From positions 262,415 to 326,414 of the forward strand of contig NW_002060966.1 in the NCBI RefSeq assembly GCF_000150275.1: 64,000 bases of DNA. Direction: 5' to 3'. This document shows, piece by piece, positions 3,001 to 37,800 of this stretch. A program made the position numbers and the translations under genes. The stretch comes from Trichoplax adhaerens (lineage: Eukaryota; Animalia; Placozoa). The notes under the pieces were generated by a model. The model was not told the DNA's origin, did no database searches, and saw only the letters and a program-made list of their open reading frames with translations. Each line of letters starts with the position of its first letter. Position 1 is the first letter of the stretch.

Positions 3001-4399
3001 CCTGAACTGGGTATGCTGAGGCAGTTGGAATAGTATTATCCGATGACCTAAAAAAAGAGGAGTGGTTGCGATTTAAATCAAGTTTAGAGAAGATGCAGTC
3101 CTATTCCTACTTACTCTATTGCCTAAAACGATAACTATTCTCATAAATTATTTAAATAAATCATTATTGTAAATCTATCCTTTTCCAACTTACCATTGTT
3201 GTCGTGGTGCGGCCCATCTACTGGCCGCATATTCTTTTAGCTTACGTTGTAAAACAGCATTCATATCTAATGTTGCCTTTAATCGTGCAGCTAACAAGAC
3301 ACTAAAATGTAAAGAGAATGGATTAAATTTCAGACTATCGTATGATTGTCTAATATTTAGAAAGCGAGCATAAACGGATGTAGATTTCTTACTTTTCTTC
3401 TTGATAATGCTTGTTCTCTATTTGATACTGTTTAACTTTAGATGTTAAATAGTCAATATGGCGTTGAAGTCGTTCCTATTATTAATCAATGAAACTTATG
3501 ATTATACTGTATATATATATCATCTATTCAACTACAACAGTCACGTTATATATTACAATTCACAACACATGATTTATTTACCGATTCCGGCATCGAGTGT
3601 TCACTTCTTGTTTGACTTAAACCGCTATATAAAAAATCGTTTATGACATAAATTTAGTATAAAGGTTTTTAAAAGATCTACTTTCCAATTTACAGTAAAT
3701 CGAGAATTATCAAATGCTTATACAAAATTCGCTAACTTACCTATCAAGAAGGCCGCTACCGTAGATACCATCACGCTCTCCGTAAGGATACGAATTGAAA
3801 TTAGGAGGCCGATTAGTAGGTCTAGCAAAAGTTAGAATAGTTAGCACGCTTTTGACATAAATTCAATTGCAAATAAAAAGTTGGATTACAATAATCAAAC
3901 TTTCCAATTCAATTAAGTTGATTGAATTTTTTACTTACTCATAAAAATTATCTGGCATTCGTTCAAAGATCAGACCAGGATCATTAGTAGAAGCATGGGA
4001 ATAAGAAGACTGTGACGGATTAAATAAAATTGAAAATAAGAATTAGGGCTCAATACGTCTAGTCATCGTTGATCGTTCTATTCACTATCAATTATTCTAA
4101 TTAATGAACATGAAAAGAAAATTATAGTTTGAGTGGAAATTTTTAGCAGATATTCAACATTGTAATTCATAACGCTAATCTTATTGAATATCAACATCTT
4201 AGCCATAATTATTCGACTCACTGGTACTGATGCCAGACTAGACTCGGAACTACCACGATGTTGGAGAGGATACATCACATTTCTGTTTCTATAATCGAAT
4301 TGGCGTGGTGAGGAAATTGAATTAAAGCTGTCGTTTCTATTCGGCATGCGATTTGCTTCATCAGAAAATCCGCTTAAGCAAGTATCGAATGTTGTTGGC
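1..4399 (-). CDS. Multi-exon gene: Ser/Pro/Asn-rich protein with a short coiled coil and one divergent, probably Ca2+-independent C2 domain (ends not fully resolved)
   Basis: Phase-consistent GT-AG exons at about 4399-4222, 4009-3939, 3821-3741, 3624-3582, 3427-3393, 3302-3194 and 3047-2461 (contains ORF 2378..2998), then the C2 exons at about 2097-2060, 1921-1844, 1586-1466, 1319-1244, 1175-1106 and 999-904. Coiled coil YQEENVLLAARLKATLDMNAVLQRKLKEY. The C2 exons translate as NYLGSLLFEVRY-YQKKGQLCITLMDAE..YFFVNL..RKTELFHVTKKFPINQVYNFSL..FVINLSV..LG...TWKQV, a synaptotagmin-type C2 pattern without the Ca-binding Asp residues. The junction near 2460-2100 is unresolved. Confidence 0.7.
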
Positions 4400-7300: not shown

Positions 7301-10300
7301 GCTTGTAAGTCTTTACTATGATAGTCAATCGATGATGATAAATGATCACTTGTGAAAATTCGATCTAATCTTGAATTGATAGTGACATAAAAAAGATTTT
7401 CCAATCGAATTGAATATTTAAAACGTTTCAATGTGTGCCATTGCAATCCATTAATCGTGTAATCCAAGTCTAAATGGAAATATAACGGAATGAAGGAGTA
7501 ACCGGACTAATAATAGTAATTAATATTGCCAGCCTAGAAACTGATCATTGCACAAAATTAAAATTAATGATAGAAGTAGCAATCACATTCCAAGCTTTGA
7601 AGATAGAGCTATTCTTTAAACTGCTATGGAATATCAAACATGCACAAAATCGTATGATCAAATCAATACATTTGGTTCATTGTTTACTAGAATGTATCAG
7701 CACAATTATGGAAAGAAGCCAACAAGTTGATAAATGACTGACAGCTGAAATATGAATTTATACAATCGAGAAATAGCTATTAAATTGTAGTAGTAAATCT
7801 CTCGTGCCATATGAGTATCACGTTGAGCTCTATTCCATCGACGATCGGCGTGATTCAAGTTAGTAGAGTCTAAATTATATGAAAAAGCAATCGAGGGAAA
7901 TGACAACAATTAGAATACAATATACATATAAAAGTATGATTGTTATTATTTCAACATTGCAAGCGAAGGAATGTGGATGTCATAATTAATAACAATATGA
8001 TCAATAAACGTCATTAGCGCTAAGTTAAGTGTTTAGAATAAGCAATACAAATGAATTTGAATATAACAATTAATTAATTAGTTCTTCTACCAATGATATT
8101 CACCATGCAGTGTGTAATGTCTTCACGTGTATTGCCATTATTGATAATTGTTAGGCGCTACCTATTGAGAAGAAGGATCTAAAAACAAGTTTTTCAACGT
8201 ACCATGCATTCCATAGCTATTTTGTTTGTATTTTTGCCATTTATTCACATGATATAGGTAAACAGTGATCCTCTTACTCTATCGGTAAGATCTGTCATTT
8301 GGCATAGCGACTACAACAGTGATAAACAATGGATTCGTTCTATTTATTCCCAGTCTATATGAAATTGCCATCTGTTACATGACAAAAACATAATATCTTC
8401 GTATACTGTTCGGCCCCAATCAGTCTAGATAGACTACGGGTGATGATGAGTAAGTTAATTGATTCGTTAGTACTATAGTTTCTACTGTATTAGCTTACAA
8501 GATAGCAGGTAATAACCCGTAAATGATGAATCCATGCTGCCGGTATCTTAATGCCACACCTAGTTATTACCTATCTTAACATCATTAGATCAACGAATGG
8601 TGCTTTCCACGTCGATTAGGTTGGCTGAAGGTTATATAGTATTAATACTAAGCTATTGGGTGCAATTGTCATACAACTAAATTTAATTTTGATATTATCT
8701 ACTGCGTATTAATCACTAATTTTCGAAAGAATACTTTCAATTCTTTTTAATTAGCTTTGATGATAGTCTAATCATTTAATTTATTGCAATAACGCATTCA
8801 ACGTTAATTACAAGTATAACTTCAACACACCTTATACAGTGTAAAATCGTGATTTTTGGGGGGACGGAGGGAGGGAATTTTACGAATTTGAATGGAATTT
8901 AAAACTCGCATCTCTCTCATTAGGCTTTTTATCAATTACACCTAGACCGCAACGTTTGTTATTGATTTGCGGTTTCTTTCTTAAATATATGACGATATAT
9001 TACGAGTAACATGTCATGTCCAAGAATAGATGATAACACGCTGATTTCTGAATTGGATACGACTAAAATTACGTCTACTATCTATTCCAATGTGCGATAG
9101 AGCTTATAGCTACACCAGGGTATAGAAATTTCAATACTGCTTAAATTAAAATAATCTCCTCTACAGTATAAGGAACACTCAATGGTATGCAGCATAGATC
9201 AACTTCAGTATCGAAAAGCAACTTTAAACAATATATCTGCTACTAGTAGTAAATGATAACTGAATTCCTTTACTACTTCCTCTTTTGTCAATGGCTAATT
9301 TATGCAGGGCGATTATTTTTGAAATGATAATAAATAATAGTTATGCTTTGATTCATAGTCTATAAAGTACTGATGAATTGTAATGAATTGTGATTATTTA
9401 CATTCTTCAATATGCACTTAAAATAATAAAAAAGGGTCCCATCGATATTAAGTGAAACGTATAGTACCATAGTATATAATCGTAGCTGATGATACAGTTA
9501 TCAGATATCGGCCACTATGAAATCTCACTTTATAGCCAGATATCTCGGTATAAATAAATATTAAGTAATTTACATGATAATCGAAATGATCAGCATATGC
9601 CGGTATTAAAATTGAATTAATGATACGCGAAATTATATGATATGCCATACCTTATCCTACTATTACGGCTAGGTACAAGTAGGGTATCACAGGCTTACAG
9701 CTAGATACTTTGGTAGTAACACAGTTAATACGAAAATGTGAACTAGCATTCAAAATTCAGTAATATGAACTAATACTAATCGAAGATATGCGATTGTAAA
9801 GGATTATAACAATTATAATTATTAAATGGTCATATGTTGCATTATTTAAGTATTTGCCTGATGTTTCACCTTGCTGTCAAGCATGCAGACTTGAATATGC
9901 TAATATTTATCTTAAACTCAAAGAAATTTTTACAAGATCACATTTAACATGTGAACCGCTATTGAATAATGCTTACGCTATATGACTAGATGCTAATATT
10001 AGCTGTAGCCAATAATGCAGAATTTAATAAAAGACAGATTTGCTACTACGTAAGTATCGATAAAAATTATATTTTGCAGGTTCATATACTAGTTGTTAAT
10101 AGAAATTTCAAATTGAGTTAGCGATACAACATACATCCAGTATTGTAAGAGTAGCAAGTAAAAGAATTAATAGTTATTAAATATATAAGTTATATAGCAT
10201 AGGATATAATGGTTTTATTAATTGATAGATAAAACTGTCTTCGTTTATTACTATAATATAGGACTAAGTTTCGTAATGAAATGCTATGATAGGCTAAGGC

Positions 10301-15514: not shown

Positions 15515-16270
15515 ACTAGTGTATTTGCACGATGGTTTTAGTTCCATTTTGCCAGTTGAAAGGGTACACTAGGACTACTGTATGCAGTACAGTAGAGTAT
15601 TGAACATTGTTTTCAAATAGGTATCCGTCTTTCCGGCCATCTGTCAAAGGACCGTACACTGAGTGTCTGAGTAGAGTATTGAACATTGTTTTTATTAAAT
15701 AGGTATCCGCCTTTCCGTCTATCCGTCGAACATTGGTTTCAAACAGGTGTCCGTCTTTCTGGCCATCCGTCAAAGGACCGTACGCTGAGTAGAGTATTGA
15801 ACATGATCTTCGAATAGGCATCCGTCTTTCTGGCCATCCGTCACAGGACAGTACACGACACAGAGTCCCAGTGTAGTACATTTGGACAGATACACAGAGG
15901 TATCCATCTTTCTGGCCATCCGTCAAAGGACCGTACACTGAGTAGAGTATTGAACATTATCTTCGAAGAGGCATCCGTCTTTCTAGCCATCCGTCACAGG
16001 ACAGTACACAGAGACTCTACACAGAGTCGAGTACAGCACATTTGGACAGATATCAAATAGGTATCCGTCTTTCTGACCATCCGTCAAAGGACAGTACACA
16101 CAGTCCAGTACAGTACATTTGGACAGCAGTCCAATAACACCATGAGCAAAAGCGACAAAAAGTCACGCAGTGTAAAATAGGTTAAATGCACACCTGAATG
16201 GGATACACTACTATGTCAAGTTACAAGCTCTCTACTGTAAGTACTGTAGCCGCCAGATCGAGCGGACGAT
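15515..16270. mobile_element. Possible non-autonomous Helitron/Helentron-associated (DINE/HINE-like) element containing the minisatellite
   Basis: Begins AAACTAGT, has internal tandem repeats and CAGTA runs, and ends with TGCACACC..TGTCAAGTTACAAGCTCTCTACTG..GCGGACG, which recalls the conserved tail of invertebrate HINE-like elements (recalled resemblance only). Confidence 0.3.
15590..16130 (+). repeat. Complex minisatellite: 7 copies of a ~40 bp core separated by two types of spacer
   Basis: Core GGTATCCGTCTTTCTGGCCATCCGTCAAAGGACCGTACAC at about 15620, 15702 (truncated), 15746, 15816, 15899, 15970 and 16060. Spacer A resembles TGAGTAGAGTATTGAACATTGTTTTCAAATA; spacer B resembles (GACA)CAGAGTC..GTACATTTGGACAGATA. 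ORF 15516..15938 is a translation of this repeat. Confidence 0.9.
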
Positions 16271-20599: not shown

Positions 20600-21700
20600 C
20601 TTTCCCTAGATTACTTCGCTGACAAGTAACTATGGCCTTGTTTATGCACTTATGTCAACATAAACCACAGCATAGGACTGTTGATGTAAATAGAGTAGGA
20701 CTTTAGCCTTGGCAATGCAACTGAATGTTTCAATGTGTATTTGAACGTTACCTTGTATTTATATGGACGAAAATATCTTTTATGCCTCACGACCGTTTGT
20801 GGTATATTAAAGTTAACTGTAATTCTACCATTTTTAAATAAATTTGTAAACTTGCTGCTATGGAACCATTTAGCGTAAAACCCTTCATAGTTGAAACTCA
20901 CAAGATTAATTGGATAATTTATCCTGAAAATTTCTTGTAAAAATAACTGTAAACGAAGAAAGTAATGTAATGGGTGATATATTCTCATACATATTTGGAA
21001 TACTGACTCTAATATCTACTACTTTATCTATTAGTAACTTAAACCGATGAGGTGCTGAGATAGATCCTGTCATTGAGTAAATGTATTCTTTCTACAAAAC
21101 ATAGCCTCTTGTTAACGATCCTTAAATGGTGTGAATACGTTCGCAAATGGATTTATGCAATACAGTCATACCTTACAGTGGGTGACGGTGCTTGGCATGT
21201 TTGATTCTGTTTGTTTCAATTGTAATTTGTTGATTACTCTATTTCTTTGAAATAACTCGCATAAAACATAAAATCTATATTTGTTAAGTGCTCTACACTA
21301 ATATCCATAGCAATGTTCGTCGATGGGTCTTGCACTCGTATTCTGTTTTGGACTCTTGGTACTTAATCGACGATCCTTGGTTTACAGTAAACTATGAGAC
21401 TGCCCGTTCTAGTTAAAATTTCAAACCAAACGTATTTAACATTTGAAATGCAATAATATAGATGTTCGTTTATCTGAGGCTTTGAATTTACCATGATGCC
21501 ACAAAAAATGTACAATAATAAGGCTCCATCGTACAGAAAGCATAGAGGTATTGCTTTTATTAGACAATTTTATCAGCGGAATATTTAACGAAAAGCGTAC
21601 GATAGTAAGGCTTCATCGTAAATCAGGTGTACTGTAAAGTAAGATGCCGAAGAAGAAAAGTAAGGAAGACTCGTTGTGCAAGTCATGAACACGCATGTAC
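20600..21700 (-). pseudogene. Decayed paralog (P1) of the multi-TM GRL-like family
   Basis: Broken frames give FLYDGAFIIVHFLWHH (cf. FTIRNITLVAVTFWHL in 22683-24968), LCELFQRNRVINKLQLKQTE (cf. IQKQFQTFKTSTINEESIWMKEIE) and APHRFKLLIDK (cf. QPTKFSIFIMLCDK). Many stops and frameshifts. Confidence 0.5.
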
Positions 21701-21889
21701 ATACGCTATTACACTGTACTATATACTCTAATAGAAATTTGGATCAACTTCCAGCGATACAGGTGCACATATGTATATGTTAAAGTCCGAAATACAGTAA
21801 TTTCACTTAAATTTTTGGGCTTTAGCCGGATATAATGCATAATGGCCGATTATGGGTTTTGGCCGCAACCTATATAATAGAATACAAAT

Positions 21890-22300
21890 TACAGACTCAA
21901 TATAATCTTCATACACCACCAACTAATCAATACTGCAATTTCACAGTGTTTTGCTTATGGAGCTTAAGGTCTCAATAAAGAAAGCTTTTTGTTCAGTATA
22001 TAAGTTTACCTGAATATATTGACTTTTCTTAGAATTAAAAATTATAATTGCAATTGCTTAGCCTACTTTACCAAGAACAAATTCAGTATTTACCTATGTT
22101 TATCACTTTTACTACACTTTACCCATCAGAGTGTTCGAGTGAAGCTCTATACCACAACAAAATTGGTTATTGACTTCAAAATATACCTGCATTAGTTTAT
22201 ATCATGCATGATACATCTGCAAGTTTTGATTCTCCATTTCTTACTGATACTATTAAATTTCCTATCATTTCTAATCATATTATAATTTTAATTGTCAAAG
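21890..22300 (-). pseudogene. Fragment (P2) of the 3' half of the same family
   Basis: Patchy co-linear nucleotide similarity to 33370-33690, including an exact 16-mer ATACCTGCATTAGTTT at about 22183 and 33668. Translates VLISWWCM (cf. IITNF*CI and LIINYW). Confidence 0.4.
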
Positions 22301-22573
22301 GTTTCACCTCAAATGAGGATGGAATCGCCGAAACTGAACCTAATTCAAATTTAGCCAGTTATAGCTGATTTTTGCTTTCTATGAGAAATCATTCAGTTGC
22401 TCTTGGCCTGCATGTGATACAACTGCAGCGAAAATTTCTACGGTACTATTATTTCAGTAAACAGTGCTATCGCTTCCAAGCTTGTTCAAATTCTCCAACC
22501 AAGTATACTAATACGAACCTCCTTACAGATATTGACTTTAATTTTATTTAACATCTCTTTAAATTATAGGATA

Positions 22574-22700
22574 CTAGTACAAACTCCCGTCGCTTTGCTG
22601 ACGGTTTACGATAATGTGCTCATTTAACAGATAGTATTACCATTTGTCGTACTCAGGTAGACCTGTCAGAGGTTCAGTAACTTTATACCGTGTACTGTGT
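22574..22700 (-). mobile_element. Helitron 3' terminus, copy 1 (intact)
   Basis: Minus strand reads CCGTCAGCAAAGCGACGG (hairpin, 22604-22587), 9 nt, then CTAG (22577-22574) followed by T: the canonical Helitron 3' end. The upstream 70-125 bp are shared with three other copies. Confidence 0.8.
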
Positions 22701-24968
22701 ACTATGAGGTAGTGCGCCTATATATGAATCTGAGGAATATTGCTGAGCGCAATCATAGCCGCAGCAGCAAAGTATTAGCTTCGTAGCGTCCGCAAGTCCA
22801 TTTACAACAGCACCTTCACTAGTTCCGAACGCAAGTGCTTTTTCATCAATCCATTTCCACATTTTTTGGCACAGAGCCAGGCTCGAATCTCGGCTAATAC
22901 TGTTTGCCCATTTATAACAAAGCCAAGTTGTGCATGGTAGGTACCATATAAAAACACAAACTTTATAATAGAACCACTCTAAGGAGTCGAACGTGTAATA
23001 CCATACAACCACTTCTGTGTATACCAGCAGGAAAATACAATGAAAAACAGGGATTCCAAGGAGTAGCAATTTTACCGCATTGCAGTCATCACCAATATGT
23101 TTGAGTAAAAATCTTTTATCAATTTCTATCTCTTTTTTCTCTTCTGTATATAGGGCTTCTGCAGCTTCGCGTACANNNNNNNNNNNNNNNNNNNNNNNNN
23201 NNNNNNNNNNNNNNNNNNNNNNNNNAAAATAAAGCGATTACCCTTGCTTTTATCGCAAAGCATAATAAAGATGCTAAATTTTGTAGGTTGTTCAATTTTC
23301 TTTTTTGGATCCTTTTCTTGAGAATTTAATAGGATCTTATAGATTGCACTCTTAAAATCTACTTCAATAATCTCTGTATTCCCTGTAAAAGCATATAGAT
23401 CGTGTATTATAAATTTGATACAAAACTACCACTGGTAAAACTTATTTGTACACATGCAACTGATATCTGACTAATCGTGGTATGTCAGCAAGTATGCATA
23501 TAGGCTGTAAAATGATATCCAATACAGTACTTATAATGCATATGTCACTACCCGAAATTATGATGTGATACAGTACCTGTAGCTTAATTTGATGCATTAG
23601 ATCATATTCAACTTATATACTGTACATACACACCCAATAAAGACAATTTAATGAATGTTATCATATTAAGATGGTTACATAAAAAAATTTATGGTAGTTT
23701 GTACCTTTGATGTCTTAAAAACTTGACTCAGAACCTCACGAGTTTAAGCTACTGTACATATATTCCCGTATACTTATTATACAGCTATACAATATATATA
23801 TATATCAGTATACAATCACCTTGCTGTACTGCTTTCGGTTCAAAATCCTTTAACAAGAAATCATCGGTATTCAATGAATTCGTAAATTTATTGAACTGTT
23901 CCGTAAGTTCATTAAGGCTAAGATGAAGTGTAGTTAATGCTGGATCTTTTGATTTGCAAAGTTTTTCCAATTGCAAAACGAATATAATAAAAACCGCTAC
24001 TGATGAAAGTAAGTTATACAAAAAATTAATTGTAATATTGTCTGCCTTGTTCTCCAAATGCTTTTTTGAATTGTCATTATTTAATGCAAAATAAGCATTG
24101 ACGCCTAGAGCTGTTGCCAAATAAAGGTTTATCCACGCCGTTCTCACTCTCTTTAGGGATTTTTTGCAGAACGTAGAACCCTTTTGAAAGTTTGACTTTC
24201 CCAAGTTCGAGTTCAATATATGTAAAAAATATGATGAATTTGCTAACGCCATAAATTCTGAAACTTTATACTTGATCATGAATGATAGATTTTGGCATTC
24301 TGAAATTCTCACAACAAGCTGCACTAAATTTAATAAGTGCCAGAAGGTTACAGCGACTAATGTAATGTTTCGAATGGTGAAAATTGAAAGACTACATCCA
24401 CAATTTAGTGATCCATTTAGTGTAAATAGTTCTAGAAAACTGATTTCTTTATTTTCTGATGCGATCCGTAATTTTAAGTTATTCGTACTATAAAAAGCAA
24501 TATTATCATACGTTAAGAGTTTGAGCTACGTTTTGAAAAGTAAACGTCGTCTTTGTTAAGCAAGGTATTGCTCAAAGGTAGCTGAGTCAAGTATACTAAA
24601 CTTAAGTACTTTTGAATTGAATACCTTGATCGTCTTAGCTGTTCATTCGCATTCTTATTTATTCTCGAGTCTTCCGCTGTATGCATACTAGCGACAATGA
24701 TTATAGCAAAAATCTCCAAAATAAACGCTACACTCAGATAAGAAACAGTTATCTGTTCTTCGTTCGTTGATGGTTTGGTTACGTTTGCAACCATTTTTAA
24801 TTTTCTAGCAGTGATATTAGTCTGATAGCAGGTATAGAATAAGACTGCATATAAGGTTAGTCCTAAATTCGCCATTTCAATTAGAATAAGAATGTTACGT
24901 ATAAAGTAATAGAAACGGTTCCAAAATCTTTTTAAGCATCCTAAAGAAGGCAAATATTTACGACCCAT
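22683..24968 (-). CDS. Apparently intact ~550 aa multi-pass membrane protein (G3); candidate divergent gustatory-receptor-like/7TM ion channel with two extra N-terminal TMs
   Basis: Exon 1 is 24968-24625 (344 nt, phase 2), exon 2 is 24487-23820 (668 nt, phase 1) and exon 3 is 23382-22683, interrupted by a 50-N gap at 23176-23225. Splice sites are GT-AG and phases are consistent. This joins ORFs 24513..24968, 23785..24324 and 22683..23069, with about 9 hydrophobic segments. The CDS is well supported; the family identity is inference. Confidence 0.75.
23176..23225. other. Assembly gap (50 N) inside G3 exon 3
   Basis: N run of placeholder length. Confidence 0.99.
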
Positions 24969-25396
24969 CTACAGTATGATATAGTATATTAATCAACCAC
25001 ATCTAAAATTTTGGGCAGCTAGTTAATACGTTCTGACACTTTCTGTCTCTTGTCGCTCAATACTACGGCATAGTAAAGTATGTAGGTTGATTACTCTCCA
25101 TTGCGATGTCTAACTGTGATATTGTTCAGACTTTTCCCACGTGCTAAAGCAATAAAAAGCTAATGTATTGAACTGTTAACTGCTTACTAGCTGGATCATC
25201 TGCATAAGCTTAGAACCATTGTGTCTATTCGATAGCGGAATTAACTACGCTTCTAGCGAAGACAACACAAAGTTGCATTTTGCATGATAATGCAGACTAT
25301 CAGCCTATAGATTGTACTGTATGCATTTCCCACTCTCATAGACCTGAACAAGTGAACATGGACCATTAGTCAGTTTCTAGTAGTCCATGACCTGAG

Positions 25397-25627
25397 GAAG
25401 GTTAAAACTAGTCAACGGTACAACGCTAGGATCAACTTGATCCTAACGCAATTCATCAAGATGCTGCTCGAGGCTCAAATTATGACCCAAAATACGCAGG
25501 AGAGACTGTCTTCATTCCAAGGATCCCCCACATTTTCCTCGAACCTGCGATATACTTTCAGCTTGTCCCGAACTTCCTGTTAACTTAATCCGACAGAATG
25601 CATCCAACTCGTTACTAGGGCTACAGT
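25397..25627 (+). mobile_element. Degenerate Helitron RepHel PIF1-helicase fragment, copy 1
   Basis: Frameshifted translation KLVNGTTL..LLEAQIMTQ(K)YAGETVFIPRIP..SSNLRYTF..LPVNL matches the Helitron helicase segment GLCNGTRL..IEAxILTGxxAGExVxIPRIxL..xLPFxFxRxQFPVxL. Confidence 0.8.
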
Positions 25628-26691
25628 GCGCTCCGTCCCCTCTCGGTTACCCCTAGCCAGTCCAGAGTAGTCGAGGCCAGGCAATGTTATCTAATTCCTT
25701 CGTTCAGTTTAACCAATGGTTTTAGCTAAGGGTCTCTAATGTGAACTAGAGGATAAAAGTTGATGATTATCAGCCGCGTCATTGATTCCACTTATTTATA
25801 TCTGTAATAATATCTCATGTAGATGGACTAGGATTGTAGAGTTAAAGAAAGAATATTTATTCAAGAAGCAAATATACCTAAGTTTCTTGATATCTTAGTA
25901 TTATTGATAAACTACTTTCGATGATATGGGCATTCATTTTGTTTCGTTTCCTGGTGAACTTCCGCGTATTTGAGAGCTCCAAGAATATTGAAAGCATGGT
26001 ATAGGCGTATGTGAAGTATATTCGTTATTTGATACTCGCGTATGTACTCAGAAAGAACGGTCGTAGGAATAGGATTGTATGGACGGTGTTCGCTGGCTTG
26101 TGCGCGATTATGCAAGCAAATCAAAAGTCTGTAGATGGCTGTAAATAGTTTATTTAGCGTTAGTGTTAACCTGAATTACTCAAGTCAACGTAACAGTTTA
26201 CCAGTAGAGAACTGAAATTTCAATACATTCACGCTACTTTCCAAGGTACCTATCATATATAATAATCCTCGCAACTCTTAAAGGTCCTGGTAAATTACGG
26301 CCTCGTGCAATCAATAAATGCTACAAGTGCGTGTATGAAATACAAGAACGACTTAATAAATTGAATTCTACACGTATATCAGTAAATGATATCTTAATAG
26401 TGCCATCACAGAAATATGTCCATTTCATCGAGAAAGTGGAGACCGTTAATATTTCCTACAGTCACCTCCCACCATAGGCTAAAGCAATCTTTCAATGCAG
26501 ATTGCAGTAATTTCAACATTATGCTTGATACCGTAACTGAGAAAGACAAATTAAAATTAAAACTGTGCATTTTCATTACAGCTACAAAGAATTCTTTTAA
26601 CCTGAAATATCAGGATGGAGATTTACCTTCAGCTGCAGCTACAAATACTGCAATTGAACGCGCTGCTATAGCACTAGCAGAAAGACTGCAA

Positions 26692-26741
26692 NNNNNNNNN
26701 NNNNNNNNNNNNNNNNNNNNNNNNNNNNNNNNNNNNNNNNN
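26692..26741. other. Assembly gap (50 N) downstream of G4 exon 2
   Basis: N run of placeholder length. Confidence 0.99.
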
Positions 26742-26902
26742 TCTGCAGATTAGTATAGTGAGATAGTTCTTTCTCGTTAGAGGTCCTCAGCTAATCGATT
26801 ACGTTGTATCTTCGTAAACGAGGTTTTGTTCAATAAATCTTAATTTTCTAAAGTTTTGAAGATTCTTGATCTATCAGCCTCACAATATCAGTATACAATT
26901 AC

Positions 26903-28033
26903 CTTGCGGTTTGGCTTTAGTTCCAATAACCGCGAACGAGAAATCATCGGTATTCAATGAATTCGTAAATTTATTGAACTGTTCCTGAAGTATATTATAG
27001 CTTTCAAGAAGTGAAGTTAATGCTTGATCTTTAGATTTGCAGAGTTTTTCCATTTGCAAAATGAACACAATCGAAAACGCTGCTGATGAAAGTGAGTTAT
27101 ACAATATATTAATTGGAATATAGTCTGCCATGTCCTCCAAAGACTTTTTCGAATTGTTATTATTTAATACAAAATAAGCATTGATGGATAGAACTGCTGC
27201 CAAATAAATGTTTATCCATACAATTTTCACTTTCTCTAGCCATTCTTTACAGAACGTAAAATCCTTTTGAAAGTTCGACTCTTTCATGTTCGAGTTCAAT
27301 ATATGTGATAAATATGATAAATTTGCTAACGCCATAAATTCTGAAACTTTATACTTGATCATGAAAGTTAGATTTTGGCAGTCTGACATTCTCACAGTAA
27401 GCTGCACAATATTTAAGATGTGCCAGATGGTTACAGCAACTGATAAAATGTTTCGAATGGTTAAAATTGAAAGACGACTTCCACAAATTTGTGATCCATT
27501 TAGTGTAAATAGTTCTAGAAAAGTGATTTCTTCATTTTTTAATACGTTCCGATATTCAGAGGAATTACTGTAAAAGGCAAATATTATTATACGTTAGGAG
27601 TTTGAGGTACGTTTTGAAAAGTAAATGTCGTCTTTATTAAGCAAAGTGTGGCTCAAAGGTAACTGAATCAAATATGCTAAGCTTCAGTACTTTCGAATTG
27701 TATACCTTGATCGTATTAACTTGTCATTCGCACTCTTATAGATTCTCAAGCTTTCCATTATATGCATTGTAGCGACAATGATTAGAGCAAGAATAAATAA
27801 AAGCGACAGTATTGCATAAGAAACTCTTGTCTTTTCTTCGTTCATTGATGGTCCGGTTACGTTTCCTCCTGTTATATCAGTGATGTAAGCCTGCTGATAG
27901 CGACCCAGAAAGATTACAAGTAATATGAAATTTACCATTTCCATTATAGTAGGAGTATTACGTATCAAGCAACAGATACCGTTACAAAATTCTATTTTAA
28001 GCATGTTGCTAAAACCAAACATTTACGATCCAT
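26903..28033 (-). pseudogene. Recent duplicate (G4) of exons 1-2 of the G3 gene; frameshift near the start, exon 3 not visible (50-N gap nearby)
   Basis: Exon 1 is 28033-27706 and exon 2 is 27567-26903 (665 nt, open, same phases as G3). The homologous ATG reads MDRKCLVLATCLK* (TAG); only the ATG at 28022 restores the frame. Could still be functional. Confidence 0.75.
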
Positions 28034-28492
28034 CTACAGTATGATATAGTATATTTGTAATAAGTTCTCGAGCAAATGTAGAGACAACGTATTAGCAAAG
28101 AATAGAACTTTACTACGAATTATAAGTGCGAACTAATAAAGTATGACAGCAACGCTCATATATATAGTCTATCATGGAATATTCTAGAACTTATTAGTAC
28201 TTATTTATTTATTATAATATACATGGACTGAATATTCTAGAAAGTTCTATATGTATACGAGGTTCAAATATGTGCGCATCTAAGACTGACCCTTACGAAG
28301 TCACTCTACTAATACTATGACAATAACCCCTTCATACTTACATATTCTCTATTTCCTAGCATTTGTCATATGGCATTACCATACTTGTAAAATAGGAATT
28401 CGTACGATAACGACTAAATTTTATTTGAAAAAGAAACAAAGCTAATATTACCATCAGCTATTTAGGAGAAAGTTTTACGAAGGCACGAAAGA

Positions 28493-28697
28493 AAGGTTAA
28501 AACTGGTCAATGGTACAACACTATGATCAACTTGGAAGTTGATCCCAACCCTATTCATCAAGAAGCTGATCAAGGCCCAAATTTTGACCCAAAAATATGC
28601 CGTAGAGACTGTCTTCATTCCAAGAATCTCCCTGTTTCACTTCCTGTTATTCAGACAGAATACTGTACAGTTCACCCAACTCGTTACTAAAGCTACC
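28493..28697 (+). mobile_element. Degenerate Helitron PIF1-helicase fragment, copy 2
   Basis: KLVNGTTL*..LIKAQILTQKYAVETVFIPRISL (in and upstream of ORF 28539..28832); close nucleotide paralog of 25397-25627. Confidence 0.8.
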
Positions 28698-28719
28698 GTA
28701 CCGTGCGTACAGAGCGATG

Positions 28720-28832
28720 TATTGTACATTGTACAGTACCGTACAGTATACCGTAAGACTTGGCGCCAAAATGGGTCATTTCAAAAACAGTACTGTACAC
28801 TTCACTGTACTGTACAGTACAGTGTACAATAG
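28720..28832. repeat. Degenerate (CAGTA/TACTG)n microsatellite
   Basis: Runs of gtacagtac and tactgtac; the same motif is dense at 32497-32590 between two Helitron ends. Confidence 0.7.
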
Positions 28833-28834
28833 TA

Positions 28835-29320
28835 TACCTAATTTCAGCTAGCTATTCCTTGGTAATTTTTTTTAGACAAACCTAACTAACTTATGTAGTA
28901 AGTAAAGTTTACAAGAAGTTATAGTTATTTTATTACATTATAGCGTCTTTTCTTTTGTATTATGGAATAAGACTGAATGAGTTGCGGATATTTCTAAAAA
29001 TAAAAATTAGATTCATTTAGCTGTAAGTTGTACTGAAAACCTAGTAATCCTATCAACTAGATGGAAGAAAGATAGAGCTGATGGTGAAATCTATCGGTTT
29101 TTATATTAGCCACGCAATCATATATTTAATCCCTTTGCTGCACTCTAGTATTACGATGATAGTTCAAATTAATTAAACTTCAAGTATACAATATTTGCCA
29201 AAATGATATTTTCTATGCAGTTTTATTTAATAACTTCATTTTTACTGATTTTAGCTTTACACAAGGAATTCCATTTAATAGCTTTGCCAAATGTACATCA
29301 TAGTCACGATTTAATGCGCA
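28835..29320. repeat. Direct segmental duplicate of 34095-34540 (part of pseudogene P7)
   Basis: Near-identical co-linear sequence, e.g. CTAACTTATGTAGTAAGTAAA..GAATAAGACTGAATGAGTTGCG..GCAGTTTTATTTAATAACTTCATTT in both places. Confidence 0.9.
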
Positions 29321-29326
29321 ATTAAT

Positions 29327-29666
29327 TAATCGACGATCCTCGGCTTACAGTAAACTATGAAACTGCCCGTCCTAGTTTAAACTTCAAACCAAACGCATTC
29401 TTAACATTTGAGATGAAATAATGTAAATATTCGTTTATCTGAGGCTTAGAATTTACCGTGATGTCACAAAAAGTGTACGATAATAAAGCTCCATCGTACA
29501 TCAGGTACAGAAATATTGCTTTTTAAATAGACAATTTTATCGGCGGAATATTTGACGATGAGTGTACGATAGTAAGGCTCCATAGTAAATCAGGTATACT
29601 GTAAAGTAAGATGCCGAAGAAGAAAAGTAAGGAAGACTCGTTGTGCAAACTATAAACACGCATGTA
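29327..29666. repeat. Direct segmental duplicate of 21364-21700 (part of pseudogene P1)
   Basis: TAATCGACGATCCT..CAGTAAACTATGA..GTAAAGTAAGATGCCGAAGAAGAAAAGTAAGGAAGACTCGTTGTGCAA..ACACGCATGTA is present in both places. Confidence 0.9.
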
Positions 29667-29728
29667 TTGTATGTACTGTAGGTATCATATATTATAGCTG
29701 AATCATATTCATGCTATATTGTATAATA

Positions 29729-29810
29729 CTAGTACAAACTACCGTCGCTTTGCTGAAAGTTTACGATAATGTACTCATTTGATAATAATTAACAGATAGT
29801 ATTACCATTC
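29729..29810 (-). mobile_element. Helitron 3' terminus, copy 2 (hairpin mutated)
   Basis: ACTAGTACAAACTACCGTCGCTTTGCTGAAAGTTTACGATAATG.. on +; CTAG at 29729-29732 is intact, but one hairpin arm is GAAAG instead of GACGG. Confidence 0.75.
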
Positions 29811-30023
29811 GACATCATACAGTATATATCCCGGTAACAGCCAGGCACTACTATATCCACAGCTATGCTTGCAGAATACTACTTTTCAATAATGCATTCA
29901 CGGATGAAATGCTATGAAATGCTATACTAAGATTGGTTAATGGAACAAAGCACATTATGATAACGAATGTACGGTGATGGATATACCAAGTTAAGATTAG
30001 CAGGTACTGTACAATGTCTTTAG

Positions 30024-32010
30024 TACTGTGGTCAATTCTATACCAATCATTTTAAAGTGTCTAAGGATCGCTTGCGTATGCAAGCAAAGATTGCTTTGTC
30101 GATAACAACCGTTATAAGACAATGTAACAATCAAAATCTGACTTACGGTAACCTTTCGCTCCCTTTACCCGAAAGTTTAATCTCTCCTACTTTAAACTGG
30201 ACTATGATCTTTACTTTATCCATTTTCATTGACATCTTCTGTTTCTTCTATAAATTCGAAAACAGCACGTAGGTAAGCTTACAAGGTATGTTAATAACTA
30301 TGCTATAATGTTAAGGAAAAATTAATAGAATAGTTACCCATAATAATCGAAAACGATGCAGTGTTGACAAGTTAAAGGCGTTATTGCTGTCCTAACTATA
30401 ACGTTCCATGTCAAAATTTAACGTGAATGAACTGATACGGCTCAAAATGATACAATGTTATATTGTATAAGAATTTAATTGACAATACCTATAAGATATA
30501 GACATTGCATAGCATTATCATAACGATGAACGTAATAGCTCGTTACGCTACTTAAAATACTGTGCAGCGCCACTGTGATTAGGGTAGAATGATATTAATT
30601 CTGTAATTATTTTAATCTTGTTCTTTAAAAATGACAGGAATGGATGCCGTGATATTAAAGGTGAATTTAGTATCTTTGAATTATTTGTACCTAGCTACTG
30701 AATAAGACGAGTAAATGGAAACTTGGTATCTGCTATCAATTTTATAGGCCTAGTAATAACTGTAGCCATCGGTTTATATCTTATTGGCGTACACTGGTAT
30801 TGGGCACCTATAGGGAATGACCAGGAATACATACACCTGTTAAGAATGAATGATTCTGAAATTTTCGGACTGTTGTTTGTATCTTGTTTACTTGGTATTC
30901 AAACCAAATTCCATCAAGATTAGCTAATTATTTAAAAGTTGTAATGATGCTTTATTTGGTGCTATCTCTAAGTGTTATGACTCAAATTGAAGTGGATCGT
31001 TTATCGTAAACCGAGATAGTTTTAATAGCAGAAGGGCTTTTAAAATTTGTGCTAGCGTGAAAGTTTACTTAAATGAATTGGAAGCGATTTATGAGTCACA
31101 GGAACAGGTTCTTCTAGAATATCGGAAATATTTAAATAAAATTCAGAAACAATTTCAGACATTTAAGACTTCAACAATCAACGAAGAATCTATATGGATG
31201 AAAGAGATTGAAATCCCATCGCCTGAAGATATGGAAAGCATTGCGGAGATATTTAAGATTTCTATTAGTCCCAGTGATTTAGTAGAAAACTGTCCTCAGT
31301 CTGAAAGTGAGAATATCAAAATTAAGATTATGTATGATGCAATAAAGGACTATGACTGGAGCTATGTGAAGTTGCTAGTATTCTTTGAAGAAGGAGATTT
31401 TCCTCCCAGCCCGACAAGAGAAGCGTATTTAGATAAGTATGCACGGTTAAAATTTTTCTATGTAGTGAAAGTACATGTAAGCAAGCAGCTGCAAGTTTGG
31501 CTTCGAATTTGGAAGAAGAATTTAAATGTAATAAATTTAACTTTGTACAATTTCTAAGAAGTAATACCAGGAATTTAAAAGATATATTTACCCTACCGCA
31601 GTGATTCTATATACTGTCTTTCTCTATATTCTCATGATAATACGTGAAAGAGCATTACCAGAGGTAAATTGGACAATTTTTCTACAGGTCTTGGTCGAAT
31701 ATGGATATATATTCTTAGGTCTAAGACTAATAATTAATTATTGGAAGAGTCATATCGAATCGGATACGACGCTGAAGTTTAACAAAATGTACGTTCAGAA
31801 AATTAAACGTAGGGTGAAGAAAATTAAAAGGAGCAGATTCTTTTAAAAATCATATTGGCAAGAATTTGTATCTGGTACAATTTGGAAATCGGTTCAGAAA
31901 ATATGTTAGTTATGGCATCTCTATCTGCTGAAATGCTTTAACACATTAGCGCGTTATTGTGTTATTTTGCTATTTTTGATTTTATTATTGCCGTCAAGGT
32001 GTTTCAGTGA
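30024..32010 (+). pseudogene. Inverted, full-length but disrupted paralog (P6) of the multi-TM GRL-like family
   Basis: Exon 1 runs to 30268 (AC|GTAGGT, phase 2) with 2 TMs and NLT/NLS sequons; the acceptor at 30638 is also phase 2, as in G3 intron 1. Matches to G3/G4: EFSIFELF vs EISFLELF; SEIFGLLFVSCLLGI vs SEFMALANSSYFLHI; LKVVMMLYLVLSLSV vs VKIVWINIYLAAVLSI; LEAIYESQEQVLLEYRKYLNKIQKQFQTF vs LEKLCKSKDPALTTLHLSLNELTEQFNKF; W..LEIGSENMLVMASL..LLCYFAIFDF vs W..LAFGTSEGAVVNGL..CCGYDCAQQY. Several stops and frameshifts. Confidence 0.75.
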
Positions 32011-32388
32011 CTTAAAATTTGGGAAGTTTTTCAACAAAATACCAGTATTATGGAGTGAACGTTAACTTTTAGAATTTTCCTTCAAGTTTTTTAATTGTAA
32101 TCATCCTAGCTTAGAATTTGTATCTTGATAAGTATTCTAGCTGTAAATATATGCTTCATTTAGTTGATTTTATAAGGGTAGATTTTACTTAATATCTTAG
32201 TATATTGTAAACCCGAATGTTTTATTCGGGTTAGAATTTTAAGATGGTCCGTAGCATAATTTTCGTTAAGAATCAAATAAGGTGAGTTTGTAATTCAAGT
32301 GATATATTTAGTCAATAGAATATATGTATGCTAATTTTGATCATTAATTACAGTAGAAGTTAATGCTACTATGTAATTTCATACAGTA

Positions 32389-32510
32389 CTAGTGCAAACT
32401 TCCGTCGCTTTGCTAACGGTTTACGATAATGTGCTCATTTAACAGATAGTACTACCATTTGATATACCTATCAGAGGTTCAGTAACTATTTACCGTTTAC
32501 TGTACTGTAC
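32389..32510 (-). mobile_element. Helitron 3' terminus, copy 3
   Basis: CTAG at 32389-32392; hairpin CCGTCGCTTTGCTAACGG with one mismatch; shares about 120 bp with 22574-22700, including TCAGAGGTTCAGTAACT. Confidence 0.75.
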
Positions 32511-32590
32511 AGTACGTAAGTACAGTACTTTTGTACAGCATACAGTACAGTACAGAGTACTGTACAGTACTTTAACTTAACAGTACTGTT

Positions 32591-32683
32591 ACTACAAACT
32601 CCCGTCGCTTTGCTGACGGTTTACGATAATGTGCTCATTTGTTAATAATTGACTGATAGTATTACCATTTGATAGACCTGTTA
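32591..32683 (-). mobile_element. Helitron 3' terminus, copy 4 (hairpin intact, terminal CTAG lost)
   Basis: ACTACAAACTCCCGTCGCTTTGCTGACGGTTTACGATAATGTGCTCATTT; lies in tandem about 200 bp from copy 3. Confidence 0.7.
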
Positions 32684-33122
32684 GTGTTGTTAAATTATAA
32701 ATCTAAAAAACTAATCATTAGCCTTGCACTTGAAAACGTCTTTTCTCCTTTATTGTCAGTCTCCGTCTGTTATTATATCATCCCTGGCGCGTACCGATAC
32801 GGTCCGCAAACAAGTGTACAGTATACTGTAAAAATGTATAATTTTAAGTTAAACTATACTTATATTAATTTAATAGTTTTCGGGATAGATGTGTTGAAAC
32901 TTGTTTTACTAATACGTGTATAATGCGTTATTCTGGACGTATTATGAACGTATTACATAAGCAATTGTTGAAATTATATTAACCAATAGAAGCATGAGCG
33001 CCCTATACCAGCTTTTCGAAAATTTTGAATCGTATAAGGCTTGAGCGAGGGTAACGTTCAGTGCAAGACTCCTATAAATATGACAAAGAACCACATGCAC
33101 CACTTTCATAATAGTCAAGAGT

Positions 33123-34740
33123 TTACTGCAAGCTTACCCTTGCCTAACCTAGAACTTCAAAAATAGAGAGCTTCTATAACACGTTCGCTCTTACAATCTT
33201 CTATGCTGATGAATGGGCAAAAGGTATGCAATAATTACGATTATTAGTAAAGAAATTCAGCGAAAAGAGGATACGAGTTGCAATATAAAGCAGTAAGGCA
33301 CTTTCTATTGTATCATTAATACGGCGCATATAACTATAGTTGAGGTTTCAGAGACCAAGTCCCGATACTCTCATCAAAATACATCAGAAATTAGTAATTA
33401 TAGTTTAGACATAACTATATCCGTATTGAAAAAGTTTATAAATAAAGCAAATGCTTGCAATTTTACTGACTGTAGCTGTATTTGTAGGTATTAGTAACCT
33501 TATTAATCTTTCCAACTGCTTTCGAAATACTACAGTATTTATAAGTTGTGTATCTTTAAAGGTCGTAAATAAAATTACCACAAATTCTTTCTATGAGAGT
33601 GTTATCACTATACGTGGACCTTTTGGTATTATAAGACTCAGCTCCTTGTACGAGGTAGGCCAGTCCATACCTGCATTAGTTTTACTCTGCTACTCACGCT
33701 AGGTGAGTATTTCAATTTATAAAAGTTTCTGGCTTTCATGCTCTACCTTTGCCTTTGAATAACAATTTTGGAGAATCATAAAAATCTAGTATTATTTATC
33801 TTTATCCTCTTGACTGATAATCATTAAGGTGGAACATCTGCAGAATGCAGAATATCGGAATGTTAGCACTCTATGACGCAGCTAACGGTAACTGGTAGTA
33901 TATATTGCAGTTTTAAATTTGAAATATAACTTAAGAAAAGTCTATGATCTATTATCTAAGTAAACCCTTATTACTTGAATTCTATACGTTGAAACTCTGA
34001 AATCATAAGCAATAACATACAGTAGATCACATCTATAAAAAAATAGATGAATCGTATATTAAGACTATAAGATTATAAAAGTGGCTAGAGAATGTCTAAT
34101 TGCATCTAGCTATTCCCTGGCAGTTGTTATACGCACCTAACTTATGTAGTAAGTAAAATTTACAAGAAGTTGTAGTTCTTGTTTTATTTTTGAGAAGACA
34201 TTTTATTACATTATTCCCTTTTCTTTAGTATAAAGGAATAAGACTGAATGAGTTGCGAATATTGCTAAAAGTAAAAGTTAGATTCATTTAACTGTAAGTT
34301 ATACTGCAAAACCTAGTAATCCTAGCAACTGGATGGAGGGAAGATAGAGTTGATGACAAAATCTATCGATATTCAGATTAGTACTTCAGATTAATTGTAC
34401 TTCAAGTATACAATATTGCCAAAATGGTATTTTCTATGCAGTTTTATTTAATAACTTCATTTCAACTAATTTTAGTTTTATGCAAGGAATCCCATTTAAC
34501 AGCTTTGCCAGTGGTTATCATAACCACAATTTAGTGCGTATACATTCAAATTTTCATGTAATTTTGGCGAAGCAGTACCTTGCAGTACCAAAATGACGGC
34601 AAATTGTTGTAGATAAAACATCATTGTCGATATCAATTTCCTAGATACTAGATATGATGAGAATTAAAAACACAGTAAATCCTACGGATATAAATTAATC
34701 GTGATCAGATTAAGAGAAGAAATACTTAAGATTACAGCAT
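33123..34740 (-). pseudogene. Near full-length decayed paralog (P7) of the multi-TM GRL-like family
   Basis: FYLQQFAVILVLQGTASPKLHENLN vs G3 FILEIFAIIIVASMHTAEDSRINKNAN; KIKQELQLLVNFTYYIS vs KYKVSEFMALANSSYFLH; LFQYGYSYV*TIITNF* vs P6 LVEYGYIFLGLRLIINYW; LLYIATRI vs LKIILARI; ends KLSIFEVLG*ARVSLQ*. Many in-frame stops. Confidence 0.7.
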
Positions 34741-34835: not shown

Positions 34836-37800
34836 CTAATCTTCTCCGTCGGGGTGTAGAAATGGCGTAATATCAGACACTTTGGTTATTTCGGAAGCGT
34901 TAAAAGTTTCTGAACACATCGGACATGGAATCTCATCCTCAATAATTCTGTTATCAAGTCGATAAAGTTAATATGTTGACGATTTCAATACCCTAAAGAG
35001 ATTATTAGTAAATTCTATCATAAAAATAGATAATCACTTACGATTTAAAATCTTCATATAGAGCAGGAAAATTACACTTTGGACAATTAGTCCATTCATC
35101 GACAGTCATATGGCGTCCCTAATCAATCCGGTAAATAATCAGTTAATCAAAGAACAACAGCAAAATCACAATTATTTGTCTATTAAATTCGTAGTATACC
35201 ACAAATAAAGCGCAGTCAGATCATTGAGTGATATTATGGCAGTTAACTTAAATATTGGCTCTATTTTTTGATAAAAGCCTACCGTAACTATGCAATATGG
35301 GATAGTATTTTTACAGTCAGGACAATCAAGTTGTGTTTGAGGTAGCTCATATTTGCAGAAAGGACAGGGTTGTTGAGTTTCTTCTACTTCAGACTTATCT
35401 GGTTTTCTATATCGAATTATAAACAAAATGATCTTCTTTACTTTATTTTCATTTAATTACTTAGCAATCGCTAATATTTCAATTTCGTTTGCAAAACTTT
35501 TTAATTGAAAATAACCTGACGATTTGTTCTATTTTCTTTTTATACTTTAAATCTATTTTATTACGATATTCTGGGCGAACCAGCATAGCCGCATAGCCGA
35601 ATGCAGAATTTTTTAATCCAGATCGATGGCATTCGATAATAGTAGAGGTCAAGATTGGTACAACATCTAGGGAGGTAAAAAATATTAAATTCTTAATTTT
35701 TATCCAGTAGGAATAACGTAACGTTAATCGTTGATATACAATCATATTTCGTTGTATTATACTAGTAATATTACTACTTACGTGATCCAAATTTACTAAT
35801 ATTATTTGCTACTCTAATTAGCATTCTGGCTGCTTTCACATGATCGCCCCGTTTTACATGCATCTATATCAACATGGTGGAGAAAGCATTAGTTTAAGGT
35901 TACCATCTCATAACACATGAATCAGACTAGATCATACCTTGACTAATATATAACTATGTAAAATCATAAGATTCTGAGACATTTCCGAAGGTATCTTAAT
36001 TTTTTGCTTGCGTAATTCTGTGATCAATAAAAATGAAGAATTATATTTGCTTTAAACTTAAGAACTCGCACAACTTTTACTTCGCTGAAACAGGATTTAA
36101 TTTCACGTAATGATTATCCGAAATATAAGTAAGTATGTCAACTTTTTACTTTGTACCTTGACACATGCTAAATAGCAGATCATGAGCAACTCTGTAATTG
36201 CCTGAAATTGATAAAAAATATTTAAAGCCTTATTTATATTTACTTATATACGGTACAATAACAATTTAATGGAGTAAAAATATTCATTTAAGGCTCTTAC
36301 CTTGGGTTTGTTCTTCTCTAGCAATAATAATTGCTGTTCTAGCAGCTTCACGATACTGGCGAAGAGCCATATATAATCGAAACAAATAGGTGGCATCCTG
36401 TGGTTCAAAATCAAAGACGATTACAATAAGATTCAATTTGCATCTTTAAGTTTTGGAGGAGTTCTTTAATTATGAAAGTTTTTTAGCTTCAAAATCCATA
36501 CTCAGCAATTATAGATTCAATAGCATGCAAATATTTTACGACTTTGCGACTAAAACTTGCTAAAATATTATTACTTTAGGTACACCATCTACTTCGCCCA
36601 TTAGGTAATCAATTAATTGATGAGTTAATGCTTCATCTTGAGCGCGACCAACCTAACGGTTATAGAAGCAAAAATTACCACGTTGTATTTTATGGGCAGT
36701 TTTTCAATTCTTGAAATTGTACTACGCGATATACATACAGTTTCAATTGCCATGTCAATGCTTTTATTTCCTTCGCCAGGTGGTTGAGTACGCAAAAAGT
36801 ACTTCAATGCCTACTCAATGTACAAATATTCTAGTATTTATAGACGTTTAAATGAATTCTATTCATTAGCGATACGAAATCGCTTGAGTAGCGGAATATT
36901 TGGTTAAGTTTTACCTTGACATATTTTGTGGCCTTCAAGAAGAATTTACCAGCTAAGAAATAATATTTTCTATTTTCAAAATATAGAGCTATGCTCTCGT
37001 ATTCTTCGCTACTAGCATCGTCTCCTGCAATTAGAGAAGCATCGCGAGATGTAATTTATACTCATATTCTAAACAGTTATTTGCGATATATCCGTGAATA
37101 AATATCGACGCATTAGAGACATATACTGTAGACCATAGCTCATGATGCACTGCTAATAAATTCTTAACATTTTATATTCGATACTAAGCAAAATATTGTA
37201 CCTATTATTTCGGCATATAGTTCCATTTGATCATGCGTCTATAATAGAGAGTTATGAAATAATATTTATTAAACTATTGCTCTAAAATTAGTTAAACGAA
37301 TTTGCCGTACCGTTGCTAGTTGGAAAGCTTCGTTTGTACACTTGGACATAATAAGAAATTGAATTGCTGAAGCAAAATCTCCAAGTTTTTGAAAAAATCT
37401 GTAATATTGAAATGCATATAGTAATAGTTAGACAACAATCGAGAGCAAAATATTATTAAACAAATCTCTACGAATATAAAACTTTACCCATAAGATATAC
37501 AGTAGTTATAAAATTACGGTATCTTGCAGATTAAATACTAGCACTGAGTGATGTAGCCATATCAATGATCTTTTTCTTTAATAACCAGCTAATTAGTGTT
37601 ATAATAGGATACTCACAATGCTACCATTTTAGCACCTTCGACAGAATGAGTCTCTCGGACTATCCTAACTGCTTCTTCTGGCTTCTGTAAATGCTCTAAA
37701 TTGATTCTATAATATCATTTTAAGAGCAGATCATATTTCAGTCAGGTATTGTACGAGTTATTCTATATCATACGATTAGTTCCAGTAAATATTAAATTCG

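Follow-up and report, generated by a model that had tools for sequence, protein, structure and literature searches.

The stretch of DNA studied here (the window, 64,000 nucleotides, nt) belongs to Trichoplax adhaerens and was taken from an assembly of 105.6 Mb in 1414 contigs. Its guanine-cytosine (GC) content is about 33%, so that long open frames would hardly arise at random. On its minus strand lie two tandem genes, G3 and G4, followed by an inverted pseudogene, P6, and these three sequences belong to one family of predicted membrane proteins, which is the subject of this report. A first interpretation made from the letters alone (hereafter the sequence-only reading) had described six copies of this family (G3, G4, P6, P7, P1 and P2) as a hidden birth-and-death cluster of fast-evolving, gustatory-receptor-like channels, possibly in a nerveless animal. 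The animal is indeed nerveless, the encoded proteins matching T. adhaerens entries, and the neighbouring gene that had been named WDR19 (IFT144) is recognized by its zinc-finger exon at 35175-35426, on the minus strand. The family consists of five loci: G3, G4 and P6 in the window, G5 on scaffold C1413 and G6 on the unplaced contig C581. Searches of the whole genome by profile and with P6 gave these five loci only and not an expanded repertoire.

G3 and G4 are not hidden, since both are already annotated in GenBank, though they were mis-modelled at assembly gaps. G3 is TRIADDRAFT_61559 (B3SBB9) and G4 is TRIADDRAFT_61560 (B3SBC0), both named “uncharacterized”, while exon 3 of G4 is found as the partial entry TRIADDRAFT_62930. 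Their counterparts in Trichoplax sp. H2 are TrispH2_012115 and TrispH2_010285. A literature search found no paper naming the G3 and G4 entries. Two H2 database proteins, P0009 (G3-type) and P0006 (G4-type), were used as full-length queries, the exons being otherwise searched singly.

The G3 gene comprises three exons, the last of which contains an assembly gap:

24968-24625, minus strand: G3 exon 1, with the start codon and two hydrophobic segments separated by N-glycosylation sequons; phase-2 donor
24487-23820, minus strand: G3 exon 2, with the EISFLELFT motif and three to four membrane segments; phase-1 donor
23382-22683, minus strand: G3 exon 3 including the stop codon, with a soluble loop domain, two membrane segments and the ISRDSSL..KMWKW motif
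23176-23225, no strand: assembly gap inside G3 exon 3

Exon 1 is contained in the H2 model P0009, exon 2 also encodes a coiled-coil-like helix (LEKLCKSKD..EQFNKF), and exon 3 ends in a tail that is found in G3 only and includes the residues GYDCAQQY. The last frame of G3 is open on both flanks of the gap, as expected for one continuous exon. The H2 ortholog (P0009, 586 residues) reads through this region. As its residues 390-429, about 40 codons, fall in the gap, the true gap would be about 120 nt long and not 50, and the frame likely continues across the Ns. The GenBank model 61559 splices around the gap and skips about 120 residues, including one membrane segment.

The three long minus-strand ORFs (open reading frames) of G3, used as tblastn queries, detect another copy at a distance of about 3.08 kb, with 68% identity for exon 2 and 52% for the exon 1 ORF. 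This copy is G4:

28022-27706, minus strand: G4 exon 1; the ORF starts at 28022, the ATG found further upstream (28031) not being in its frame
27567-26903, minus strand: G4 exon 2
26692-26741, no strand: assembly gap in G4 intron 2

Exon 1 of G4 is 100% identical to the corresponding part of P0006. Both genes have GT-AG introns at the same positions, in phase 2 and then in phase 1: exon 1 ends with ..CGA TCA AG|GT, and exon 2 runs from AG|T to ..CAA G|GT. These shared introns, together with 66% amino-acid identity over the aligned exon 2, bear out the proposal that G4 is a tandem duplicate of G3. Furthermore, the upstream regions of the two genes have in common a block of about 140 nt with 82% identity (25395-25529 and 28490-28632), located about 430-570 nt before the start codons, which may be a promoter or regulatory piece retained from the duplication.

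The third exon of G4 gave no match within the window when searched by tblastn with the G3 ORFs. It is located (217 codons) on an unplaced contig of 1445 bp, C496 (L005:447-1097), which shares 84% DNA identity with intron 2 and exon 3 of G3. Because the H2 model P0006 (545 residues) connects an exon of the C496 type to exons 1 and 2 of G4, this contig most likely belongs in the gap at 26692-26741, with the caveat that its ends do not overlap the flanks of the gap. The last exon of the GenBank model 61560 (25915-26124) is spurious. A 92-codon open frame without Pfam match (26416-26691, plus strand) lies opposite to the strand of G4 and runs into the same gap.

The other three members are the distant pseudogene P6 in the window, G6 on C581 and the intact-looking G5 on C1413, as follows:

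30638-31846, plus strand: P6, inverted pseudogene of the G6 subtype; phase-2 acceptor at 30636-30637, in-frame TGA at 30699-30701
30057-30272, plus strand: possible P6 exon 1, read from the sequence only; it has a single hydrophobic segment, and its GTAGGT donor would give phase 2
C581:1-1646, frame 70-1305, minus strand: G6, an uninterrupted frame of 412 codons
C1413:9668000-9677999, minus strand, positions 4195-4740, 4719-5051, 5078-5857 and 7005-7361 of that interval: pieces of G5

When the 1978 six-frame pieces of the window were compared with the family hidden Markov model (HMM), the two best non-self matches were pieces of P6 (E 2.2e-4 and 0.058), on the same strand and collinear with the model. 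The phase-2 acceptor of P6 lies eight codons before EFSIFELF, as in G3, while the similarity of its possible exon 1 to the family is not significant. The membership of P6 only becomes visible through its intact paralog G6. This latter was found by searching the genome with P6, which led to the unplaced contig C581 (1646 bp, 85% DNA identity to 30282-31819). G6 reads from an EISF-type motif through the stop codon in one open frame, which P6 covers in six frame pieces, with at least four frameshifts and one in-frame stop, the TGA, where G6 has an Arg. P6 is thus a pseudogene, and the earlier description of an inverted pseudogene with the same phase-2 intron holds, as does that of birth and death, exemplified by the tandem duplicates G3 and G4 and by P6. 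Like C496, C581 was probably left out of the scaffold as recent duplicates confused the assembly.

The relationship of G6 to the other members was evaluated by Smith-Waterman alignments, with nulls obtained by shuffling within 15-residue windows so that the hydropathy profile was kept. The z scores reach 8.0 (local) and 10.6 (global) against the G3 type, 6.6 and 8.7 against the G4 type, and 5.9 against the last exon of G5. An hhalign comparison of the G3-type and P6-type subfamilies gave E 2.2e-4 with 45% probability. G5 was found by whole-genome profile search at C1413:9.672-9.674 Mb, where an exon-2 piece (E 2e-8) and an exon-3 piece (E 5e-17) are both open. A two-membrane-segment ORF located 1.15 kb upstream, beyond an assembly gap (6794-6843), is the putative first exon of G5, whose C-terminal tail is basic. 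No annotated protein entry for G5 turned up in the searches run. G3, G4, G5, G6 and P6 carry the same motifs in the same order: E-I/F-S/T-F-x-E/A-L-F after the phase-2 intron, LE-K/N-LC-x-SK after helix 6 and W-x-x-R/H-I-S/E-x-D/N-S..K-M/Y after the last helix. Judged by these motifs and by shuffle tests within the family (z 6-14), the five loci are one family. The gene models of two mis-annotated Trichoplax genes, G3 and G4, can now be corrected, and two unplaced contigs, C496 and C581, are tied to their family.

The claim of a single family had also covered P7, P1 and P2. It stands for G3, G4 and P6 (z 8-10.6, hhalign E 2.2e-4) and falls for the other three, which are not real copies. In the P7 area (about 32900-34740) and in the P1/P2 area (about 20600-22600), the family HMMs give background scores only, and neither phmmer with P6, G5 and G6 as queries nor nhmmer at the DNA level gives a match. 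A scan of tiles in which stops were read as X gave scores of 34-59 in these areas, within the null distribution: tiles elsewhere average 41-47, with maxima of 53-85. The translations are full of stops, and the family motif was not found in them. In the same way, the alignment of terminal segments that had been put forward (GYDCAQQY in G3, CYFAIFDF in P6 and G*ARVSLQ* in P7) has no statistical support, the P6 piece lying beyond the stop of P6 and in another frame. The likeness among the P7 and P1/P2 areas is non-coding and comes from an interspersed repeat of about 90 nt, described below, and from a low-copy segment:

28947-29666, non-coding: low-copy intergenic segment, which repeats at 34218-34510 and 21360-21699

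This segment is also present on two tiny unplaced contigs (C655:1265-1881 and C446:160-512, 86-92% identity), which suggests that these are more pieces of the locus missing from the scaffold. The tile 58051-58950 (plus strand), which scores 85 in a long gapped alignment with the G4 type over 58345-58950, stops being read as X, was negative with HMM and nhmmer searches and is taken as a chance match.

A hydropathy scan detects seven strongly hydrophobic segments common to the H2 proteins P0009 and P0006. In P0009, they lie at about 26-44, 75-93, 156-174, 232-250, 266-284, 461-479 and 495-513, and an amphipathic, conserved one is found at about 185-205. The first two are the strongly hydrophobic, conserved segments of exon 1 of G3 and G4. 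The loop 45-74 holds sequons, and Lys and Arg abound in the tail and in the loops 94-155 and 206-231. Hydropathy, charge and sequons would fit about eight membrane helices, both termini and the loop 285-460 being cytoplasmic and the short outer loops carrying the N-glycosylation sequons. This inner loop, which separates helices 6 and 7 by about 175 residues, would consist of the coiled-coil-like helix and then of a beta-rich part, the latter appearing in low-confidence models only. Helix 3 is preceded by the conserved motif E-I-S/T-F-x-E/A-L-F-T, helices 6 and 8 are followed by LE-K/N-LC-x-SK and W-x-x-RIS-x-D/N-S..C-x-KM-x-x-W, respectively, and GD-x-x-x-A-x-K-x-LL-x-x-IP lies at helix 7. The last pair of transmembrane (TM) segments and the helix that follows form the most conserved stretch, and the tail is the least conserved part.

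Searches for relatives outside Trichoplax were negative. A HMMER search with the exon 2 profile against 1.84 billion representative proteins gave Trichoplax proteins only, plus two coiled-coil proteins (P0003 and P0004). These two were rejected as relatives, being matches of coiled-coil composition drawn by the coiled-coil-like helix. As such a search needs roughly 45 bits with a database of this size, relatives as distant as G5 would escape it. Word-seeded searches of 5.8 billion clusters, with P0006 or with a six-row alignment, gave the same Trichoplax proteins only, and a sequence search of the PDB gave no match. Pfam scans of G3, G4, G5 and G6 with E up to 10 found no family, including 7tm_7, 7tm_6, Trehalose_recp and DUF3537. 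AlphaFold2 models from shallow alignments of four and six rows have a mean predicted local distance difference test (pLDDT) of 33.4 and 38.7 and a predicted template modelling score of 0.22-0.23. With these models of pLDDT <40, which are too poor to weigh on either side, Foldseek gave no match in the PDB at E <= 0.001. The ESM Atlas model has a pLDDT of 0.38, and feature and structure searches of the Atlas gave noise only.

It had been proposed that the family is an extremely divergent branch of the seven-transmembrane ion channels (7TMICs), which include insect gustatory and odorant receptors (GR/OR) and metazoan gustatory-receptor-like proteins (GRLs). From exon 2 onward, the protein would provide TM0 to TM7, and a tetramer would form a ligand-gated pore. 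If true, this would reveal a hidden chemoreceptor repertoire in an animal without neurons. The two groups are alike in several respects. Both are multi-pass, helical proteins with short outer loops and a long inner one, and both evolve fast, in tandem copies with pseudogenes. The segments encoded from exon 2 onward would be compatible with an order in which four TMs precede a long helical inner loop, followed by a TM pair and a helix. Conservation peaks in the last TM pair and the helix after it, and 7TMICs are likewise best conserved toward the C-terminus (Himmel et al. 2023, bioRxiv 10.1101/2023.08.30.555482). Moreover, sequence searches often miss GRL-type proteins (PMC7746228). A search of the Trichoplax genome with 7tm_7 gave no match, and as its controls were silent too, this result carries no information.

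However, the features expected of 7TMICs at the sequence level are lacking. 7TMICs have seven helices, an inner N-terminus and an outer C-terminus, a long TM4-6 anchor domain and a TM7 in two parts, 7a and the pore-lining 7b (PMC7746228; bioRxiv 10.1101/2023.08.30.555482). The count of seven from exon 2 leaves out the two conserved hydrophobic segments of exon 1; G5 has a similar two-TM piece upstream, and the distribution of charges would fit eight helices with both ends inside. The segment put forward as TM7 has a weak hydrophobicity and exists in G3 only: G4 stops before it, and the tails of G5 and G6 are hydrophilic and unrelated. The pore helix 7b would thus be missing in G4, G5 and G6, yet the G4 proteins of strains H1 and H2 are 100% identical.

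The motif of TM7, (T/S)Yhhhhh(Q/K/E)(F/L/M) (PMC7746228), had been likened to the GYDCAQQY end of G3. Read in register, G-Y-D-C-A-Q-Q-Y-S fits this motif at one of its four positions, the Tyr, which is replaced by Asn in the H2 ortholog, and its “hydrophobic” positions are occupied by D, C, A, Q and Q. In random translations of this DNA, a pattern as loose as this turns up about 0.09 times per 600 residues. The last 230 codons or so of G3 form a single exon, while 3' introns are characteristic of the GRL genes of animals (positions as described in PMC7746228). Lengths differ as well, although this is a weak criterion: 545-586 residues for the Trichoplax proteins and about 350-500 for GRLs (PMC7746228, Benton et al. 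2020). The family thus differs from GR/OR/GRL proteins by about eight membrane segments instead of seven, by the lack of a conserved TM7 with its motif and of 3' introns, by longer proteins, by only five loci and by the absence of profile similarity. If four of five members lack the pore helix, the channel would not be a 7TMIC family, and the GRL identity, which appears unsupported on present evidence, is considered very unlikely. It should be emphasized that matching a motif and a topology by eye, with one exon dropped, can mimic a GRL.

The rate at which G3 and G4 diverge is the other main property of the family. Nei-Gojobori counts were made on the aligned codons of the exon pieces, pooled for the overall count and for the stop-codon simulation. 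The overall proportions of nonsynonymous (pN) and synonymous (pS) differences are 0.230 and 0.199 (ratio about 1.15; p = 0.28 against equality). By exon piece, pN/pS values are 0.338/0.315, 0.177/0.104, 0.369/0.216 and 0.174/0.265, and the difference in exon 2 (0.177 against 0.104) has a nominal, uncorrected p of 0.037. The view that the genes evolve fast is thereby confirmed, pN/pS being about 1 in frames that have stayed open. The two genes share 87% identity in intron 1 and 67% in exon 1, a difference suggestive of mosaic gene conversion, of accelerated exon change or of a combination of them. Between H1 and H2, G4 is 100% identical over 543 residues and G3 92.3% overall, with 84% in its last part. 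One copy appears frozen between two strains, while the adjoining one has drifted to 92%.

An overall pN/pS indistinguishable from 1 would also be obtained if the loci were decaying or non-functional duplicates, or annotation artefacts with frames open by chance. The plainly dead state of P6 and the lack of homologs elsewhere in the search of 1.84 billion proteins go in the same direction. Nevertheless, frames of 222 and >160 codons are open in DNA of 33% GC, and in none of 5000 neutral simulations did the frame stay open after the 332 substitutions observed, which indicates that the frames of G3 and G4 are under selection. Intron positions and phases are conserved, and full-length models exist in a second strain, in which G4 is identical. 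Decay or artefact is therefore regarded as quite unlikely.

Taken together, these data are best explained, with a probability somewhat above even, by an orphan family, restricted to Trichoplax, whose polytopic membrane proteins are about 545-586 residues long and change fast while their frames are kept. This description resembles that of other taxonomically restricted tandem families, with no outside relative, tandem duplication, a pseudogene, a replacement rate close to the silent rate, and copies (G4 exon 3 and G6) on unplaced contigs where the assembly broke. Several points weigh against it. “Trichoplax-restricted” may mean “placozoan-restricted”, other placozoan genera being possibly absent from the libraries searched. 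The topology comes from a simple hydropathy scan and not from a trained predictor, and the structural models are too poor (pLDDT 33-39) to set aside a known fold, that of 7TMICs included. A pN/pS near 1 can come from relaxed constraint on one copy, and Nei-Gojobori counts are rough in a genome of 33% GC with mosaic gene conversion.

As a guess at the function of such an orphan family, its members could be membrane glycoproteins assembling through the juxtamembrane coiled-coil-like helix. Their exposed surfaces might change fast through contact with a variable partner, such as microbes, food cues or self/non-self determinants. A bolder proposal, which seems rather unlikely, is that they represent a new class of surface membrane proteins, being either cryptic 7TMICs whose last helix was lost or replaced or an unrelated new fold, with exposed parts under diversifying selection and a role in sensing or recognition. 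In any case, the locus offers a clean case of a lineage-restricted membrane family whose amino acids change at the silent rate while the frames are kept.

The interspersed repeat mentioned above has four copies in the cluster:

22571-22657, minus strand: repeat of about 90 nt, just downstream of the G3 stop codon
29723-29812: same repeat
32387-32472: same repeat
32590-32672: same repeat

On the minus strand, CTAG|T stands about 10 nt beyond its GC-rich hairpin (CCGTCAGCAAAGCGACGG), as at the 3' end of a Helitron, and the repeat has 445 candidate sites genome-wide, four of them within 10 kb here. The location of one such hairpin-CTAG repeat 30-110 nt downstream of the G3 stop, the three other copies in the cluster and the hundreds of candidate sites in the genome could suggest that Helitron-like elements captured the family copies as cargo and spread them. 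However, the repeat is absent from 10 kb around G5 and from the two contigs that carry G6 and G4 exon 3, no helicase remnant was found among the ORFs scanned, and the spacer between G3 and G4 is single copy in the genome. Furthermore, G3 and G4 result from a simple tandem duplication, with a spacing of about 3.08 kb and the upstream region included. Helitron capture appears extremely unlikely and was rejected.

Elsewhere in the window, a 140-codon ORF (15516-15938, minus strand) in a region with a local GC content of about 0.38-0.39 contains three times the unit YGPLTDG-x-KDG-x-L.

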